NCBI GenBank assembly: GCA_009103225.1 | Contig: RHPI01002048.1 | Location: 1-64,000 of the forward strand | Direction: 5' to 3' | Source of the DNA: Chlorokybus atmophyticus | Lineage: Eukaryota > Plantae > Mesostigma and Chlorokybus algae | Length of the DNA: 64,000 bases | Shown: positions 19,601 through 49,404 of the stretch, one piece after another | How positions within the stretch are numbered: the stretch's first letter is position 1 | Layout: the number at the start of each line of letters is the position of its first letter | Program-made: the position numbers and the translations under genes | Notes under the pieces: model-generated | The model's database searches: none | Told to the model about the DNA's origin: nothing | The model's input: only the letters and a program-made list of their open reading frames with translations

Positions 19601-22600
19601 TCGTCTATGCTGAGGATGGCGGGCAGATCCTCATAGGTAATGGCAACGGCACGCGCTGCTGCCTTGGCATTCTCGTAGGTGTCCGCCGCAATCACGCCAA
19701 TGACCTGCCATAAGTTGTCAGTAACTCTTGATACACCATGCAAAAATGCACAACATCACATCACATCACATATCATAAGTCAAATCGAACACAAACCTGT
19801 CCAACACAAGTCACTTCATCTTCGGCAAAGCATAGCTCATCTTTTTTCACGTGCCCAAAATTGTTGCTGCCAGGCACGTCTTTGGCGCAAAAGAAGCCTT
19901 CAAAGCCAGGACACAACTCCGCAGCTGAGGTGTCAATGTGCAGCAGCCGCGCATGGGGACGGGTGCTGACCACCAGGGCTGCATGCAAGCAGTCGGAGGG
20001 TGCTGCAACATCATCCACGTATTGCGCCTCACCCGTCACCTGTCAGATACACAAAGGCGGGTTTGCACCGACATGTTGCTAGCAAGCTACACCGATGAAG
20101 GCGTGGATTGAGGAGCAGCAAAAATTGTAAAATGTTGTGGCTAGTTCAGAAACGGTTGCAGCTTAGCAGCTGATAGATTGAGTGCAGCAATAAGATATCA
20201 TACACGAGTGGCGTACCATGTCAAGCTTATACACTTGTTTAGTTCTTCCTACCTGAAGTTCCGCTGTCATGTGCATGAGAGGTGCACCAACTGGCTCGCC
20301 ATTCTGGCTATGGTCATAGTATTGGAGTCCACTAGATGTGGGCCGCTCATATGCAACTGGAGCTGACCTGTACACAGCAAAAAACATTTGCACAAGTTGC
20401 TGATTGACCACCAACACCGTACACCCACCTGTAGGTGTCTGGTAAGGAGTGTTTGAAGTCTGGGACCTCCTGCTCCAACTTGTATGTGGTGTGGACAAAG
20501 AACTTGAACAGAAAACTTGCCGCTAGCGATCGCCGGAACTCAATCATGCCACCTGATACAAAAAGTGAGGAACAGTGAGATGTACAACGGGTACCTCACA
20601 AAGATGACCAAGACGCCCTCTTCAGCGAATTTTACCACAACGGTGTGTCATGTATGCATACAATACCTGTTATGCACAAGCATGCCATATGTGGGTATCT
20701 CCTTCCGTACCTGGTGCATTCTGTGCAAGCGGGAGGTCCTCCGCAAGTGCCTTCAACGCTTCTTGCAGTGTTTCCTCGTTCCACGGGCGTCCCATGAGCA
20801 GGGCCTCCGTGCGTGGTGCCGACACTGAGCGTGGAGCCATGCCACCAAAGGCAAGGGACACTGTAGATACGCAAGGGGAGTCGCCAGAAAGATCAAAGGC
20901 CACACGCATGCCTGCGCATTGCACAGACTGTCAGCGTACCATGCATGCGGGACATGTTGCAGTGTACGAAGGAGAGGAGTTACTACATACCAGCATTGAC
21001 AATGGCAATGTCGTCCTCACGGCGGTGGGCCTGCTTGAACTCCTTCACGTATTCATACTTGCCCGTGTATGGAACAAAGACAGAGACCAGGACCTCTTCA
21101 GGACGCATGTCCACCTTTCGATAGCTGATGAAGAACTCTTTGGCCGGCGCAGAGCGCGGAGCAGAGGCGCCTCTTGACATGATGTTGAATGTTGCACCCG
21201 AGGCCATCCATATGGGGTTTAAATCTGATATCGGGCTGGCGGTGATGATGTTGCCACCCAAGCATGCCACATTGCGAATTTGCGAGCCAGCAAACCAACG
21301 CAGCTGCTCATGAACAGCAGCAAATGTGGATGTTTCATGGGCGGGTCGGCTTGCAATCAGCTCCTTGCATGCTTCCATCACAGCCGACAAACTAACGGAT
21401 GCACCGAACGTGACGCCTTCGTCCGCCAAAGCAATATCGTTCATCTCCGGCACTTGTGAAGCTGCTATCAACAGCGGGTACTTGATGTTCTTGAACCTCT
21501 GCTCGATCCCAACCTGACCAGATGTTCACAGCTTCCTCAGCGTACTGTCACAGCAACAAACACACTTGTAGCACACACCACTACTTGCCTCGCTGTTGCC
21601 AACAACAAGCTTTGCTGTTGGATGTTCAGCTTTGAGCGCCAGCAGCTCTTCAAGCGAAGAAGGCCGGAACCAGGAGGCGTCATTGCCAATTATCGCGAGG
21701 GGTGTTAGCTTCCTGTTCATCAGCTCCGGAGGAAAGATAGGCTCTGAGACGCCAACCTTCTTTGATTCCTTGCCAACAGCTGCTTCATTGGATGTGATTC
21801 CATTGCTTTTGCCACAATCGCACGGCTTGCCAGTTGATGGGCAGACATTCGTGCCGGCGTCATGGACATGGCTGGCGTCATGAACACCATTGGCGGCTTG
21901 GGCGTCCTCCGTGTAGGCGCTGGCATCCGTTTTAGCGAATGTCTTAAAAGCATCGAGGATGGGACGGTACCCCGTACATCGACAGAGGTTTCCAGCAAGA
22001 CACTCTTCAATCTCTGCTTCGGAAGGTGTGTGGCCATTTAAAGACCTCAGCAACGCGTACATCGACATCACAAAACCGGGAGTGCAGAAGCCACATTGCG
22101 AGCCATGCGCATTCGCCAACCTCTCCTGTACATGTCAACTCCAACTTATCAATATGTGTCGATGCATGCACGATTGCAAAGTGTCTGGTGTCTGGTGGCG
22201 GGGNNNNNNNNNNNNNNNNNNNNNNNNNNNNNNNNNNNNNNNNNNNNNNNNNNNNNNNNNNNNNNNNNNNNNNNNNNNNNNNNNNNNNNNNNNNNNNNNN
22301 NNNNNNNNNNNNNNNNNNNNNNNNNNNNNNNNNNNNNNNNNNNNNNNNNNNNNNNNNNNNNNNNNNNNNNNNNNNNNNNNNNNNNNNNNNNNNNNNNNNN
22401 NNNNNNNNNNNNNNNNNNNNNNNNNNNNNNNGGGGGGACTTACTTGGACAGGATGAAGGCCGTCTCTGCGGTTGCCAATCCCCTCCACAGTGACAACATG
22501 CATGCCTTCAATGGAGTACACCGGTGCAAGGCATGCGTTGACAGCACGATGACTGTGTGATGTATAGTCAAGGACACAACTGTACTGCATAAAATGAATG

Positions 22601-41808: not shown

Positions 41809-44800
41809 TCAACTCTCCTTGTTTATTTGAAAACGGGGCTTGCTTCGCGCACCAGCTGCCTCCACGCATGTCAATGACAGCTCCTGGCCGACGTAGTTGC
41901 CGTGGACATTAAGGCCCTGCCAAACAGACGCATGTAGTTCACAACTGACGAAACAACTGCGCGATGACGCACTTGCCATGGAGAACACATCCAGCAGAAC
42001 GAACATGCATGTCAACCAAAGGTCCAAAAGCTTGTTTTGGGAGTTTACTTACAGGAGTTGTGACAACAATGCCTTCCACCGGTCGCCCTTCAATGCGGAG
42101 CCCGACGACGAGTGAAGACCGCGTCACTCGCTTGACCACCGCAGCATATTGCTTTCCAACAGCCGCTTCAGCCGGGTTGTGAGCGGCATGCTGCGCCGAC
42201 TCACCGGACTGTTGTTGTGATTGTTGCTCGGCGCCGTCCTTGTTCCTTCCTATGCTTTGCAGTCGCTGGCCGAAGCTGCGAGCAAAGCTATGCGGCTCGT
42301 CGGCCCTGTTGAATGCGTCCCTGCCTTGCTGTTCGGATGACTCATTTGATGATACAGTACCATTAGCTAGACTTGAGGAAGCTTCCCTCAAACCGCCTGA
42401 CGATGGCAAAAGCGTCTTGCGTGACAGGCGAACGTTGCCGCGTATGTCGCGGCCAATGCATTGGACGGTCAGCTCTTGCCCGATCGACAGCACATCCTCC
42501 ACGCGTATAACCTGCATGTATGCATCATGGGCACCAACACCAACACCAACACCAACACCAACACCAACACCAACACCAACACCAACATCATCGTCATCAG
42601 CATCACAACTTAATACTTCATCGTCCAACTTACCCGTTCATGGTCAAGTTCTGATATGTGCAGCAAGGCTTGTCGGCCTGACGGGAACTCCACAAACGCG
42701 CCGTAGTCTTTAATGGCGACGACGTTCACGTTGTACTTCTCGCCGACTTCCAACTCCTTGCCAGCCACTTCTTCGACTCGCTTCTTGACAGATGCGTAGA
42801 GCTCGGCGGAGGGCGCGAAGATGCTGACTGTGCCGTCCTCGGACACAGTCAGCTTCGCCCCGTACGCGGCCTCCATGGCTTTGATGTTGGAGCCGCTCGG
42901 GCCGATGATGCGGCCGAGGAACTCCTTGTCGATGCTGATGCGGCCGAAGCGCGGCGCGCTGTCCTTGAACGACTCCTCAGGACGCGCGATCGCCGCCTCC
43001 ATCTGATCGAGGAGACGAAGCCTTGCAGACTGTGCGTTGTGCATGCCTTCAACGAGCACCTGCACCAACAAACCGGCACGTTACACACAACACGCACCCA
43101 ATGCCAATGGCAAGTGACTAACACACGTGCAAGCCATGCCACGCATGCACGCGCACACACACAGCACACATACGCACAAGCATCATCCCCCCCCNNNNNN
43201 NNNNNNNNNNNNNNNNNNNNNNNNNNNNNNNNNNNNNNNNNNNNNNNNNNNNNNNNNNNNNNNNNNNNNNNNNNNNNNNNNNNNNNNNNNNNNNNNNNNN
43301 NNNNNNNNNNNNNNNNNNNNNNNNNNNNNNNNNNNNNNNNNNNNNNNNNNNNNNNNNNNNNNNNNNNNNNNNNNNNNNNNNNNNNNNNNNNNNNNNNNNN
43401 NNNNNNNNNNNNNNNNNNNNNNNNNNNNNNNNNNNACATTAACTCATGTTGCTGACCTCAATGGGAATGCCGGGGAGTTTGACATCCAGTTGGATGGCTG
43501 TGACACCTTTGCGCGTGCCTGCGACTTTGTAGTCCATGTCGCCAAAGTGGTCCTCAATGCCCAGGATGTCCGTGATCAGCTTGTAGTTCTGAATCTTGTT
43601 GGTCCAAGGGTCCATGTCGGCGACGAGGCCGATGGAGATGCCGGCCACGTGCTCCTTGATGGGCACGCCGGCGTTCATGAGCGCCATGCTGCCGCCGCAC
43701 ACGGTCGCCATTGAGCTCGAACCATCCGAAGCGAGCACCATCGAGTTGAGCCTAATGGAGAATGGGAACTCGTCTATTGAGGGCATGACAGCTACAAGGG
43801 ACTTCTCCGCCAACATGCCTGGCATCAAATTGAGAAGTGATACGCGAGTAAGCTCGTGAGGACAACATGCATGAACAACACACATAGCTCAAGACACTTT
43901 ACCGTGGCCGATCTCTCTTCGGTTGACGCCGCCAAGCTTGCCGACTTCGTTCACGGAGAATGGCGGAAACCCGTAGTGGACGTAGAATGGCTTCGACGGG
44001 GGTCCGACAAGCGCATTCGATCGCAAGCTGTCGTCAAGGCCGCCCAGAGTCACAGTACACAATGTCTGCATGGACGCAAGACAGGTTGAGAAGGAGAGTT
44101 GAACCTTGCGCTTTGTGCAGGGAACGACATAGCACTGAGAGAGATGCAACATACGGCACTGGTGATGGTAAGTGTGATGTGCTTATTTTAAGTTGGTGTG
44201 GTTCATGCCTGTGTGCTACCCCTGGAGAACAATGAAGACCCGTGCACAATTGGCAGGATGTCGGGCTCGCATTGGATATCGCGGATCTCTTGCAGCTGGC
44301 GGCCGTCGCAACGCACGCCGTTCTGCAGCACATTGTTACGGAGTACCTGCACGTCATCCAGGTGAGTAACAGCCCAAGTGCAATGGTGCGCTGGCAAGCA
44401 TTGCCGATGAAACAAAAGCTTGAAGCCAGCACCTTGGATTGCAGCGCGGATACTGCGGCAGTAGTTTCTGCAACATCAATGTGGCGAACGGCCTCTATGG
44501 TTGAAGTATGCATCTGCGAAAGAGCTTTGCTTCGACCTGCCTATAAAACGTCGGTTACAAGGTAAGTGATGGCACGACATACTCACACAAAGGCGCGCGG
44601 CGCGACAGACAGTGCGCATGATGCAGTTCTCTTTACTATGCAAATGGCTGTACATACAGTGCGAGCCCATTTTGCTATGAGGGATGGCGACCATGCATGC
44701 ACCATGTACCTTGTCTAAAGATCCATCCATTAAGATCTGTTCCACAGTGTCATTCGCGTAGGCCTCTACCCGCTGACTAATCAGATCCGGCACCTGGAAG

Positions 44801-46931
44801 AACTTCATCTCCCGCTTCGGCTTGCCGAGGCTGGCAGCCAATGCATGCTGTGGCTCTAGAAGCTTTGTAGCCTGCGAAGGAGATGTGCGTGTTACAGTTA
44901 GCAATAAATATCCCACAAGTGAATGAGTCAAGTCACGGGCTTTGCACCTCAGAGTGTGCAAACTTGAATGCCGACGCGATGGTCGACTCCGGCAGGCTCT
45001 CTGCCGATGCTTCCACCATGACGGCATCATCCCGCGTGCAAGCGTACACCAAGTTGAGGTCGCTGTCCTCCATCTGCACCAGCACAAAGCAACATGAAAA
45101 TGAGGGCAAGCACGCTTGTCACTACTACAATTATGCTGTGTGGGTGATACTAAGCAACGTGGCAATGTGTGCCACTACTTGTGGGTACCTGCTTGGTGTT
45201 TGGGTTGACCACAAAGTCGCCATTTATCCTGCCTATCCTGACTGCACCAATGGGCCCGGCCCAAGGAAGACCTGACGTGAGCAGCGCTGCAGACGCGCCG
45301 TTTATGCACAGGACATCCGGGTCTTGCAGTGCGTCCGCACACAGCACCGATGCCACAATCTGCGCATGACACCTTGTCATGAACACATACACACAACAAC
45401 ATAGCTCCTGCCAGCAGTGATCAAGGCCAAAGGTATGTGTACCTGCGTTTCATAGTAAAAACCCTTTGGGAAAAGCGGTCGGACAGCTCGGTCGATGACT
45501 CGACTGCAAAGAACCTCACGATCCTTTGGTGCGCCCTCTCGCCGCAGAAACGTGTTGGGTATCCTGCCAATGGCATATGCGGGCTCCCTATACTCCACCT
45601 GAGTTCGTAGCCAGCCAACATCATTTGTGAGACCAGACACGCCCTGAGCAATAGCACGTGTACAAACCCAAGCAGGACACTGGTTGATATACAGCACAAG
45701 TAAGGAGACTATGTATGCTGTGAGACTTCATGCAATGTAGTGGCGTGTACCTGTAGTGGGAGGAAGTCACGGTCGCGCGAGTATGAGGGGTCAACTACCA
45801 CTGTAACTAACACGTGCGTGTCTCCATACCTAACTAACACTGATCCATCCGCCAATTTGGCCAATTTGCCGCTTTCATACCCGAATGTGCTCCCCCCTAT
45901 CGTAACTTCTTCTACACATTGATCTGCAGGGTGATAGCAGGACATTGAGTATACGAGTAGTGTTATCATGACGAGAGCACTACACCAAGCGTACAAGGAT
46001 GCAGTCTTGCTTGATATATGGTTGTTGGGAAGGGGCCCCCACGCCCGGGGGGGGGGGGGGGGGNGGGGGGGGAGGGGGGCTTGCAAGTGTGCATGCGCGT
46101 ATGCACTCGTGCATATGTGCCTCCGCGACTACACGCTACGACACACGGCCTGTGCATGCGCATGTAGCCAACAGCGCACACGTGTTTTGTGCGCTGTTGG
46201 ATATATGCGCATGTACAGACGTGCTACCCACAGCTCTACCAGTTTGGTGATGTCAACATGCACGACTACACACCAGACAACTACCTGAAAGTAAAGTGAG
46301 ACCCCACCCCAACTGCTACTTGCTTGTTCCAACACACCCTATCCCATACGACTGTGTGCGTGCGAGCTGCGGCTAGACAGAGTGCAGGTAGGCAGTTCGT
46401 GTACACATGATGCTGCAGTCTTTGCTTATGTTGCACTCAACAGCTGCGAGATCATGAGTACAACCTCTCTGTGTGCTCAATGGCCCACCTTGCCACTTTG
46501 TGGGTGCGAGTTCAGAAGCAGCTGTTTGCAGCTGCCGCAAGGCCCCCAACACACCACCCCTGCGCAGCGATGGCCCAACCTGCACAATACGCTACAGCTG
46601 AGCAGCAGCTCAAGCAGTCAAAAGCAACCAATCGGAAGTAAACAAGGGGATTATACTACTGCTTGTGCTCACAGACAACTGCCTTCTGAAGTTCAATTAC
46701 CAACACAGCAAAGACTTGTGGTTACTAGCTGCTTGCAATGCTGAAACTTAGCAGAACAGCTGGCGTGCTTACCAACGGAGCAGCGCGCTGGCTTGTCGCA
46801 ACGCCACAAGCTCTAGTCGTGTAGCAGCTGCATGCACGCCCAGCGTGTTCGCAAATCCTAGCAGAGGCGTATTTAGAAGAGGCGAGGCGGGCAGCAGCTG
46901 ATGCTGCTGCTCTCCTAAGCGCCGCCGACAT
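41809..46931 (-). CDS. PNP2: Mitochondrial polyribonucleotide nucleotidyltransferase (PNPase, plant PNP2 type)
   Basis: Ala/Arg/Ser-rich presequence; RNase PH domains ([25 protein letters not shown]; [14 protein letters not shown]; [10 protein letters not shown]); KH ([12 protein letters not shown]); S1 ([10 protein letters not shown]...LLHISEL); a probable second S1 at the C-terminus. Confidence 0.95.
42532..42585. repeat. (CACCAA)9 hexanucleotide repeat in a PNPase intron
   Basis: Seen directly. It lies between the donor at about 42632 and the acceptor at about 42513. Confidence 0.92.
43195..43435. other. Assembly gap (N run) inside a PNPase intron, preceded by a C run
   Basis: Seen directly. 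Confidence 0.99.
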
Positions 46932-47441
46932 CACCAGGCCAGCACTGTTACTTACAGCTGTGTACTGCTATTCAGCATTGACCTCTAGCATGCCAGGCCT
47001 ACAACTCTCGCAACCCAAACAGCGTTGCTCTGCTATGCGTCTCTCTAACCGCTCCTGCCGCCAGCGCAAGACACCGTCGCCGCCGCCGCCGCCGCCGCCG
47101 CCGTTGTAGCGGACTGCTGGTTTGGCTGCTGTTTGACTTCCAGGCTCGTTCTCAGCCAACAGCCAAAGCTAGCAACTCAGAGCCAAAGATTTAACCATAA
47201 TACCTCGCTTGCGTTGGCGTCACATAGCCCAGTAGCCATAACTCGCTGGCTGGCTAGCGGCGGCGGCGGCGGTGGCGTGCGGGAGGGTGTACTGCACTGT
47301 GACATTGGCATCACTTGGACCTGGAGCTGATAGATCTTCGGGCTCTTACAATCATAAATTTCTTGTGCAGCACGGCAGCCGAGGCATGACAGCGGAGTGG
47401 TTTGTTAGCTAAGCCGGGCTGCTGGGCTACTGCTTGGTGCA
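46932..47441. promoter_or_regulatory. Probable bidirectional promoter between PNPase and the GON7-like gene
   Basis: Divergent ATGs about 510 bp apart, with GC-rich (GCC/GGC)n tracts in both 5' regions. Inferred from layout only. Confidence 0.5.
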
Positions 47442-48295
47442 ATGGCAGCAGTGCAGGGCAAGTTCACGTTTGAGGGCAAAGTGGAGCACACTTCCTCTGT
47501 GGCCGTGTCTTCAGGTGAGTCACAGTCACAGTACTAGCTTGTCTGCCTCTTCTCCTGCTGGATGTTGAGTTTGCCGCATACATAGCCTCTTTCCTTTATT
47601 CGCACATTTATTGTTGGCGTGTTATTACGTATGTTGCCAGCCGTTTAGAGGTGAAAGCCATTCCACGAGGGTTTTCTTGCCAACTTAGGCATGATGAGAG
47701 CTGCTGTAAGCTTGCATTGTGTGTGCAGGTGGCAAGCTGTCGGACGCGTTTGCGGAGTTGAAAGCGGATTGCATGCGCTTCCTGGGAGAGTACATTCAGC
47801 GGGAGTGCACTGACACGGGAACCACTGGTAAATGTCAAACTTATTAAGCAATGCATCTACATCTGCAAATAGCTCACCACAAGCATGTTGTGCACGCATC
47901 GGGCATGCGCTGTTGTGTACTGTCTTGGTTGTATGTGACATGCATGTGGTGCTGTGCAGACGAGGCAAATGACGACATGGACGTGCCACTTTCGGACGAG
48001 GAAGAGTTGGGTGAGAATGGGGAGGTACGCGCTGCTGCTGTAAAGAAGGGCATTGGAAAGCCAGTGCGGAAAAAGCAGAGGGTCAGTGCGTGTGACCCGC
48101 TCGCGAGTGTGTCTCGGCACTCCGACCCATCGCTTACAGCATCGTGCAGTATTGTTGATGACTGTACTATGCGGATCAGCAGTCCTAGGGGCATCACGAA
48201 TGCTATTGCATGCAAAGCACCTGGCATGCCTTGCGTTGACCGTGTGCTGATGGTGGCGTGTTGTAACAAATGGTCCTGGTTGTGCATAGGTCTGA
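47442..48295 (+). CDS. Small 99-aa acidic protein, candidate GON7-like KEOPS subunit
   Basis: In-phase exons 47442-47514, 47729-47827, 47960-48081 and 48290-48295 give MAAVQGKFTFEGKVEHTSSVAVSSGGKLSDAFAELKADCMRFLGEYIQRECTDTGTTDEANDDMDVPLSDEEELGENGEVRAAAVKKGIGKPVRKKQRV. The gene model is well supported; the family call is inference. Confidence 0.7.
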
Positions 48296-49404
48296 GGTAG
48301 ACAAAATGTGCGCATATGGCAGTTGAAGGTGCGGAGTGAACCCGCTGGAAGTGTTGATTAAAGCAGCAGGTAGGCGTTAGATCTTGGCAACGACACTGCC
48401 AGGGTCAAGTCATGCCATCACTTCTCTGCCTACCACCAAAAGACTGTTGCCAAGGTCGATGCTGCTTGAGAGGGTGCTATAGCACCAGTGCACTGGACTT
48501 GCTCTTATGCCATAGGTGCACTGCGAGGGTATGTATGCACCAGCGTAGCGAAGACGCACTCATGTTGTTGGGAGTTTTGACTCCTTTGCGACATTTACCA
48601 AAGTGCGGACAGACTGGCTTTGTTGGGTCCCAGACATGAGCGTCGTTTTAGTAATGAGAGTATTGCACTATGTGGACGCACTCATATACTGTGCGTGTTT
48701 AGCTTTCTTGGCATATGCGGCGCGGCACTGTGTCCATGTCCAATTGGCACAAGCCAAGATGACTTGCTGCCGAGCATGGGCACGTTGTCACATATGTACA
48801 AAAGATGCACGGCGGATCACGCACATGCAAACCACACAAACTCACATGGCATACACAACTTCCTCACACCATCTTCACCGTGCTTCCACATACGGCACCA
48901 CTGGGCTGTATGCTATCGTACGGCTACGCTGCGCGCTAAGCATCACACTGATTACTTCACCTACCCCGTTAAACATGCATGCATGGCAATGGCCTACAGT
49001 TATGCCCGCTTGCACGGGCAGGTAATAAATGTGTCACGTAGTGGTGCAGTAGCCTTGGTTGGCAACGTTTGAACCGACGCTAGTCTGTACTGCTACCCAA
49101 GCTAAAAGGTTTAAAGCTCTCCTTTCCACGCAAGCTCAGCATTGTGAGAAGCATCACCCTGCTCAGTGTTGTTGCAGACCTGATGCACACAGGGTCATGG
49201 CCAATGATACATAGCCATGAGAAATTATGAATGCTACGCAGCGCCTTCAACGACAATGACATTGCCCACCGCAAACGGCAAGTGTCCATGTAGCAGCTGT
49301 ACAACAACGCAGGCCCAACCCTACATCTATATAAGCAACGCATCTGTATCGCATCTGTATTTACCTATGCTAGTAGTACTATGCTAAGCAACATGTATTG
49401 TGCC

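Follow-up and report, generated by a model that had tools for sequence, protein, structure and literature searches.

A candidate gene for a GON7-type KEOPS subunit in the streptophyte alga Chlorokybus atmophyticus

The locus, its neighbour and its transcripts

The window analysed here (i.e., the whole stretch of 64,000 nucleotides from Chlorokybus atmophyticus, a streptophyte alga) contains a small plus-strand gene of four coding exons that lies next to, and points away from, a gene resembling that for PNPase (Table 1). When the exons are joined by script, they yield a 300-nt coding sequence for a protein of 99 amino acids, and its introns are bounded by GT..AG throughout. The protein is identical (100%, full length) to jgi/Chlat1/8354/Chrsp80S07785, deposited for the same species in eukprot, a model that carries neither a Pfam annotation nor a descriptive name.

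Table 1. Coordinates of features in the window (amino-acid ranges refer to the 99-aa protein)
Feature	Position	Strand	Description
Single N	7216, 36799, 46064
Assembly gap	22204..22431		228 N
PNPase-like gene	41939..46934	-	domains RNase_PH, RNase_PH, KH, S1; head-to-head with candidate gene
Dinucleotide microsatellite	42469..42606	-	translates as (GV)n run in an ORF in the PNPase-like gene region
Assembly gap	43195..43435		241 N; inside PNPase-like gene
Shared promoter region, putative	47067..47261	.	between divergent transcript contig ends
(GCC)8 repeat	47079..47102
(GGC)4 repeat	47259..47270
5' UTR	47262..47441	+	at least from 47262; limit set by contig ends
uORF	47386..47412	+	8 codons (ATG...TAA), 30 nt upstream of main ATG
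CDS exon 1	47442..47514	+	aa 1-24 and first base of codon 25; strand 1, EGK turn, strand 2 (predicted, AlphaFold2 strands 2-8 and 16-22)
CDS exon 2	47729..47827	+	aa 25-57; GG loop and amphipathic helix 28-52 (predicted)
CDS exon 3	47960..48081	+	aa 58-98; acidic disordered stretch, then basic KK/RKKQR end
CDS exon 4	48290..48295	+	V99 codon and TGA stop
3' UTR	48296..48680	+	contigs stop at 48679-48680

Contigs from public runs were aligned to positions 46800-49200; their origin from RNA is the tool's guess, but they are spliced. In contigs from two studies, the three splice joints match the gene model exactly (skips of 214, 132 and 208 bases): the joint 47514/47729 is present in contigs of both studies, the joint 48081/48290 is present in contigs of runs X1 and X2, and one 819-nt contig that covers 47307-48679 has all three introns spliced out. 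A scan of the spliced mRNA for open reading frames returns the 99-aa frame as the longest. The earlier note, made from the letters alone, had proposed a four-exon gene for 99 amino acids, and its coordinates proved exact, in agreement with both the deposited protein and the joints from the two studies; it had also placed a PNPase gene head-to-head with the candidate, and the minus-strand neighbour does carry two RNase_PH domains, a KH domain and an S1 domain.

Several contigs depart from the main form. Two come from run X1 at low depth: one joins an alternative donor at 48022 to the exon-4 acceptor (within 48022-48289, plus strand, skipping 265 bases), a form whose product would lack the basic C-terminus, and the other keeps intron 3 (48059-48269), from which a read-through product would be 169 amino acids long. 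In run X3, a single low-depth contig at 47827-47962 (plus strand) shows a GT..AC joint with two extra letters (AT) and several mismatches, and probably stems from an error in the assembly or the reads, not from a real isoform. Another contig of this run (454 nt, depth 63) aligns over just 35 bases at 48956-48990 and has long unmatched flanks on both sides; the match is probably a short repeat in common with another locus. The uORF in the 5' UTR (Table 1) may dampen translation of the candidate gene.

The start of the PNPase-like gene lies near 46934, and the contig of its transcript extends to 47066. Because the contig on this side ends there and that of the candidate starts at 47262, the two genes are divergent, with about 200 bp between transcript ends. 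The (GCC)8 and (GGC)4 repeats flank this intertranscript region, and the approximately 200 bp at 47067-47270 are probably a compact bidirectional promoter. Since one of the two assembly gaps in the window falls inside the PNPase-like gene, the model of this gene is incomplete in the current assembly. The (GV)n microsatellite probably lies in an intron or in a low-complexity linker near the exon for the S1 domain.

The encoded protein and its relative in Pyramimonas

The 99-aa protein has a mass of 10.7 kDa (10.68) and a pI of 4.9. In AlphaFold2 models, which were built on an alignment of two sequences (i.e., the Chlorokybus protein and the Pyramimonas relative described below), two strands flank an EGK turn and are followed by one helix, all at the residues given in Table 1, with pLDDT of 82-88 over residues 1-50; the tail, at about 50, is disordered. 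Net charge is -11 over residues 58-80 and +8 over residues 81-99, and this basic C-terminus may, by analogy, serve as a nuclear localisation signal. The layout that had been read from the letters, namely, two N-terminal beta segments around a turn, an amphipathic helix, an acidic disordered stretch and a basic end, is thus recovered in full by the structure prediction and the distribution of charge.

Exhaustive phmmer comparison with 1.84 billion representative sequences recovered a sole true relative, an 85-aa protein of Pyramimonas obovata (E = 1.4e-5), which is 39% identical to the Chlorokybus protein over residues 4-76 and is encoded by a complete open reading frame in an MMETSP transcriptome. 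A third match in this search, a repeat protein of 1160 amino acids that aligned in six stretches, was discarded as due to chance or to repeats. Word-index searches with the Chlorokybus protein and with the two-sequence alignment retrieved only the protein itself and its Pyramimonas homologue, and two metagenome pattern scans, each with one of the green proteins as the confirmation sequence, gave 162 pattern matches of which none was confirmed. One gene call of 129 amino acids (L001:87-476, on a 1004-nt contig of JGI sample 3300017171) falls in the 90% cluster that also contains the Pyramimonas protein and is probably an upstream extension of its 85-aa frame. The rows returned by a sequence search of the PDB, i.e., mS23 (E = 0.17), XerA (E = 1.1) and a designed repeat (E = 1.4), are at chance level and were rejected.

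Between the two green proteins, strand 1 with the turn shares FTFxGxVE, strand 2 shares VA, the segment ahead of the helix shares GGxLS and the helix itself shares ELKAxCMxxLGEY; both sequences then continue through an acidic stretch to a lysine-rich end. Conserved hydrophobic residues lie in strand 1 (F8, F10) and along one side of the helix (L28, L35, C39/M40, L43, Y46), and the Pyramimonas protein is itself predicted to adopt the strand-strand-helix topology, at lower confidence. Identity between the two is 44% in the core (residues 1-52) and 17% in the tail, a difference that agrees with a core for folding or binding and, after it, a disordered tail. Because Pyramimonas is a chlorophyte, the family spans Streptophyta and Chlorophyta; judged from these sequences, it would be older than the split between these lineages, or else it was transferred between them.

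An open reading frame this short, with a uORF in the 5' UTR of its transcript, could in principle have arisen by chance within a non-coding or mis-annotated transcript. This explanation is effectively refuted: The frame is the longest in a spliced mRNA found in two studies; its core is modelled with confidence; and the alignment with the 39%-identical chlorophyte protein crosses both internal exon joints, which lends independent support to the gene model and identifies the frame as conserved coding sequence. The candidate is a real, transcribed and correctly spliced gene for a conserved protein of 99 amino acids.

Similarity to GON7 in sequence and predicted structure

The only Pfam family to match the Chlorokybus protein at E<=10 is PF15387 (DUF4611), with an E-value of 0.017 over the whole library and a score of 15.7 bits, which is below the gathering cut-off of 32.1 bits; for comparison, a mammalian GON7 used as control scores 140.6 bits. 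This family is that of animal GON7, since all 102 of the members fetched are named GON7 and PDB chain 6gwj_D is described as 'EKC/KEOPS complex subunit GON7'. The match aligns residues 27-79 to profile positions 30-79 and is lost once the protein is split into residues 1-57 and 58-99, so that it needs the helix and the acidic stretch together. Two further families that surfaced with the protein halves, DUF4369 (E = 0.16) and RIH_assoc (E = 0.18), were dismissed as noise. Neither green protein matches the fungal Gon7 family PF08738 at E<=10, and the Pyramimonas protein matches no family at all in the Pfam scan. By curated Pfam thresholds, therefore, the Chlorokybus protein lies outside both families.

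The signal was calibrated against shuffled sequences in two ways. An HMM built from 26 non-human mammalian GON7 sequences, each of which carries PF15387, assigns the Chlorokybus protein 10.0 bits, a value that full shuffling reached in 7 of 20,000 decoys and segment-preserving shuffling in 18 of 20,000 (empirical P ~1e-3); the Pyramimonas protein receives 5.4 bits from the same HMM (P = 0.08). When the two green sequences together were aligned to the mammalian GON7 alignment with hhalign, the score was 18.9 (P = 0.01) against a null of 10.9 +/- 2.3, and segment-preserving shuffles of the columns attained at least 18.9 in 2 cases out of 400 (P ~0.005). The register in the mammalian HMM places helix on helix and acidic region on acidic region: The GxLS cap and hydrophobic helix face of the green proteins align with the GLLS cap and hydrophobic face of helix alpha1 of GON7, LGEYIQRE falls on FGPLVQRE with acidic residues on acidic residues after it, and AKKPR of Pyramimonas falls on AKRPK. 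It is the region encoded by exon 2 that aligns with helix alpha1, whether by Pfam, hhalign or the GON7 HMM.

Comparisons that make use of language-model features or predicted shape lead to the same family. Ranked by language-model features, the nearest clusters of both the Chlorokybus protein (0.91) and the Pyramimonas protein (0.87) are DUF4611/Gon7, as they are, with weak scores, for the core (residues 1-56) alone. In a Foldseek search of both models against 350,542 PDB chains, in which all E-values were at least 1, human GON7 (6gwj_D) ranked first for the Chlorokybus model and third for the Pyramimonas model, and human GON7 in KEOPS (9fl9_E) ranked 32nd and 47th, respectively. The yeast chains of 4wx8, which by length and by residue range (2-103) are taken to be Gon7 and not Pcc1, ranked 4th and 25th (chain F, with a TM of 0.71 by target for the Chlorokybus model), 19th and 22nd (chain D), and 20th and 39th (chain E). 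A search of the ESM Atlas by shape with the Chlorokybus model gave a chordate DUF4611 cluster in row 1, an unnamed 109-aa cluster from Streptophyta in row 2 and fungal Gon7 (PF08738) in row 5; no GON7 cluster came back when the less confident Pyramimonas model served as query. The nearest Atlas neighbours of the Chlorokybus protein, in features as well as in shape, include unnamed clusters from Streptophyta (91 and 109 aa). The strand-strand-helix motif is generic, and structural superposition of the predicted models leans towards GON7 at Foldseek E-values of 1 or more throughout.

It could be argued that these signals reflect only shared composition and chance, and that the gene encodes an unrelated, lineage-restricted small acidic protein, probably nuclear, whose generic hairpin-plus-helix core binds some other partner or serves a disordered chaperone or adaptor role. 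The sub-threshold Pfam score with its dependence on helix and acidic stretch together, the lack of significance for the Pyramimonas member when taken alone, and the Foldseek E-values would all be expected under such a scenario. We consider it rather unlikely, though by no means negligible, for three reasons: Shuffled sequences matched in composition and in segments rarely attain the observed scores; the HMM, the language-model features, the Foldseek 3Di comparison and the Atlas shape search each choose one and the same family among thousands; and, with two models that were built separately, all solved GON7/Gon7 entries head the second-look list.

Test by test, the evidence for GON7 is weak, but it points one way, and weak sequence scores are to be expected of a true member, since the human and yeast proteins bind their partners identically at 12-19% identity. 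The earlier note had gone further in naming the protein the algal orthologue of GON7. What stands of that claim is the sole Pfam match to PF15387, the P-values from the HMM and hhalign, and the nearest language-model clusters; what counts against it is that the Pfam match falls short of its cut-off, that the motif is generic and that the Pyramimonas protein reaches a P of only 0.08. In the profile comparison proposed there as a check, hhalign and the HMM spoke for GON7 and the Pfam score stayed under its threshold, and assignment to some other known family, which would have spoken against GON7, did not emerge, every test that was run having favoured GON7. Orthology to GON7 is therefore best described as a well-founded candidate and not as a demonstrated fact.

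A possible fifth KEOPS subunit in the green lineage

The modification t6A37, made by the KEOPS complex, is a universal and essential modification of tRNA, and the fifth subunit of the complex governs its oligomeric state and stability and is encoded in humans by a disease gene (Galloway-Mowat syndrome). [quoted passage not shown] Human and yeast GON7 are only 12-19% identical, yet they bind their partners identically, and the yeast protein is some 20 residues longer than its human counterpart (PMC6722078). Fifth subunits prevent the Pcc1-mediated dimerisation of four-subunit complexes (PMC9889334; PMC11077089).

The Chlorokybus protein has, by prediction, the layout of a GON7: a hairpin and a single helix that together span about 45-50 residues, an acidic disordered remainder, and a total length of about 100 amino acids. 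It resembles animal GON7 (C14orf142; PF15387; 6GWJ chain D and 9FL9 chain E) in its length of about 100 residues and acidic pI, in the glycine at position 12 within the hairpin turn, and in the amphipathic helix, acidic disordered stretch and short basic end; it differs in that structural alignments yield only 11-13% identity, in a pre-helix loop about 5 residues shorter, and in motifs (FTFxGxVE and ELKAxCMxxLGEY) that are the green proteins' own. With fungal Gon7 (PF08738; 4WX8 and 4WXA, both with Pcc1), the hairpin-plus-helix core is held in common and the Pyramimonas protein is 27% identical over 52 structurally aligned residues, whereas the family profile gives no match; in size, the algal protein is close to human GON7, the yeast protein being longer (PMC6722078).

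Taken together, these likenesses make it somewhat probable, in our judgement, that Chlorokybus has in this gene a GON7-type fifth subunit for its t6A tRNA-modifying KEOPS complex, and we regard the gene as a credible candidate for that role. By analogy with the human GON7-LAGE3 (6GWJ) and yeast Gon7-Pcc1 (4WX8/4WXA) structures, the protein would be largely disordered on its own. Because it presents the same parts in the same order, with conserved hydrophobic residues in the elements by which GON7 binds, we infer that it would cap Pcc1 as GON7 does and would occupy the surface through which Pcc1 homodimerises. With that surface occupied, we propose, KEOPS would stay a monomeric five-subunit complex, stabilised and fully working in t6A37 synthesis.

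The same role could have been acquired separately, the green protein having arisen on its own and come to bind Pcc1 in the manner of GON7. Its similarity to GON7 in sequence is marginal, and convergence between fifth subunits (GON7 and archaeal Pcc2) has been left open in the literature (PMC9889334). Independent origin is nonetheless improbable: The protein is colinear with animal GON7 from the G12 turn through the helix and acidic stretch to the basic end, and its profile scores are weak but significant, such that common descent is the more economical account. In Archaea, the Pcc2-Pcc1 dimer forms a six-stranded sheet as compared to the five strands of LAGE3-GON7 (PMC9889334), and although Pcc2, a paralogue of Pcc1, shares the proposed role of capping the Pcc1 dimerisation surface so that no KEOPS dimer forms, it has the full Pcc1 fold, as opposed to the two predicted strands and one helix of the algal protein, which showed no match to the Pcc1 family in the Pfam scan at E<=10. 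On its predicted structure, the Chlorokybus protein is not Pcc2-like.

In plants, a study of Arabidopsis KEOPS found no GON7 orthologue (PMC11077089). Its pull-down listed 671 proteins, among them the uncharacterised Q9FZG2 (At1g47820; 10.67 kDa), which the authors name as a candidate but left unvalidated and which they describe as disordered, its two antiparallel strands being connected to a helix (PMC11077089). Compared by description only, Q9FZG2 is of the same size as the Chlorokybus protein (10.67 vs. 10.68 kDa) and of like described shape, which makes it a lead towards land plants. The searchable literature up to 2026 contains no report of GON7 outside opisthokonts; what is new here is a GON7 candidate in the green lineage, GON7 having so far been reported only in animals and fungi.

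It is quite possible, though we put this more tentatively than the assignment of the gene itself, that GON7 is not an invention of opisthokonts but is at least as old as the common ancestor of plants and opisthokonts, and that the green lineage, probably including land plants, has a five-subunit KEOPS. If so, the land-plant members would be fast-evolving proteins of 90-110 amino acids such as those of the At1g47820 type, and the dimer that four-subunit Arabidopsis KEOPS forms through PCC1 when reconstituted would reflect a missing subunit and not the native state. Profile searches in land plants can now start from the two green proteins. An expressed candidate that has been kept across the streptophyte-chlorophyte split makes it testable whether the ancestral eukaryotic KEOPS had five subunits, how old GON7 is, and whether the dimeric four-subunit KEOPS of plants is the native form.
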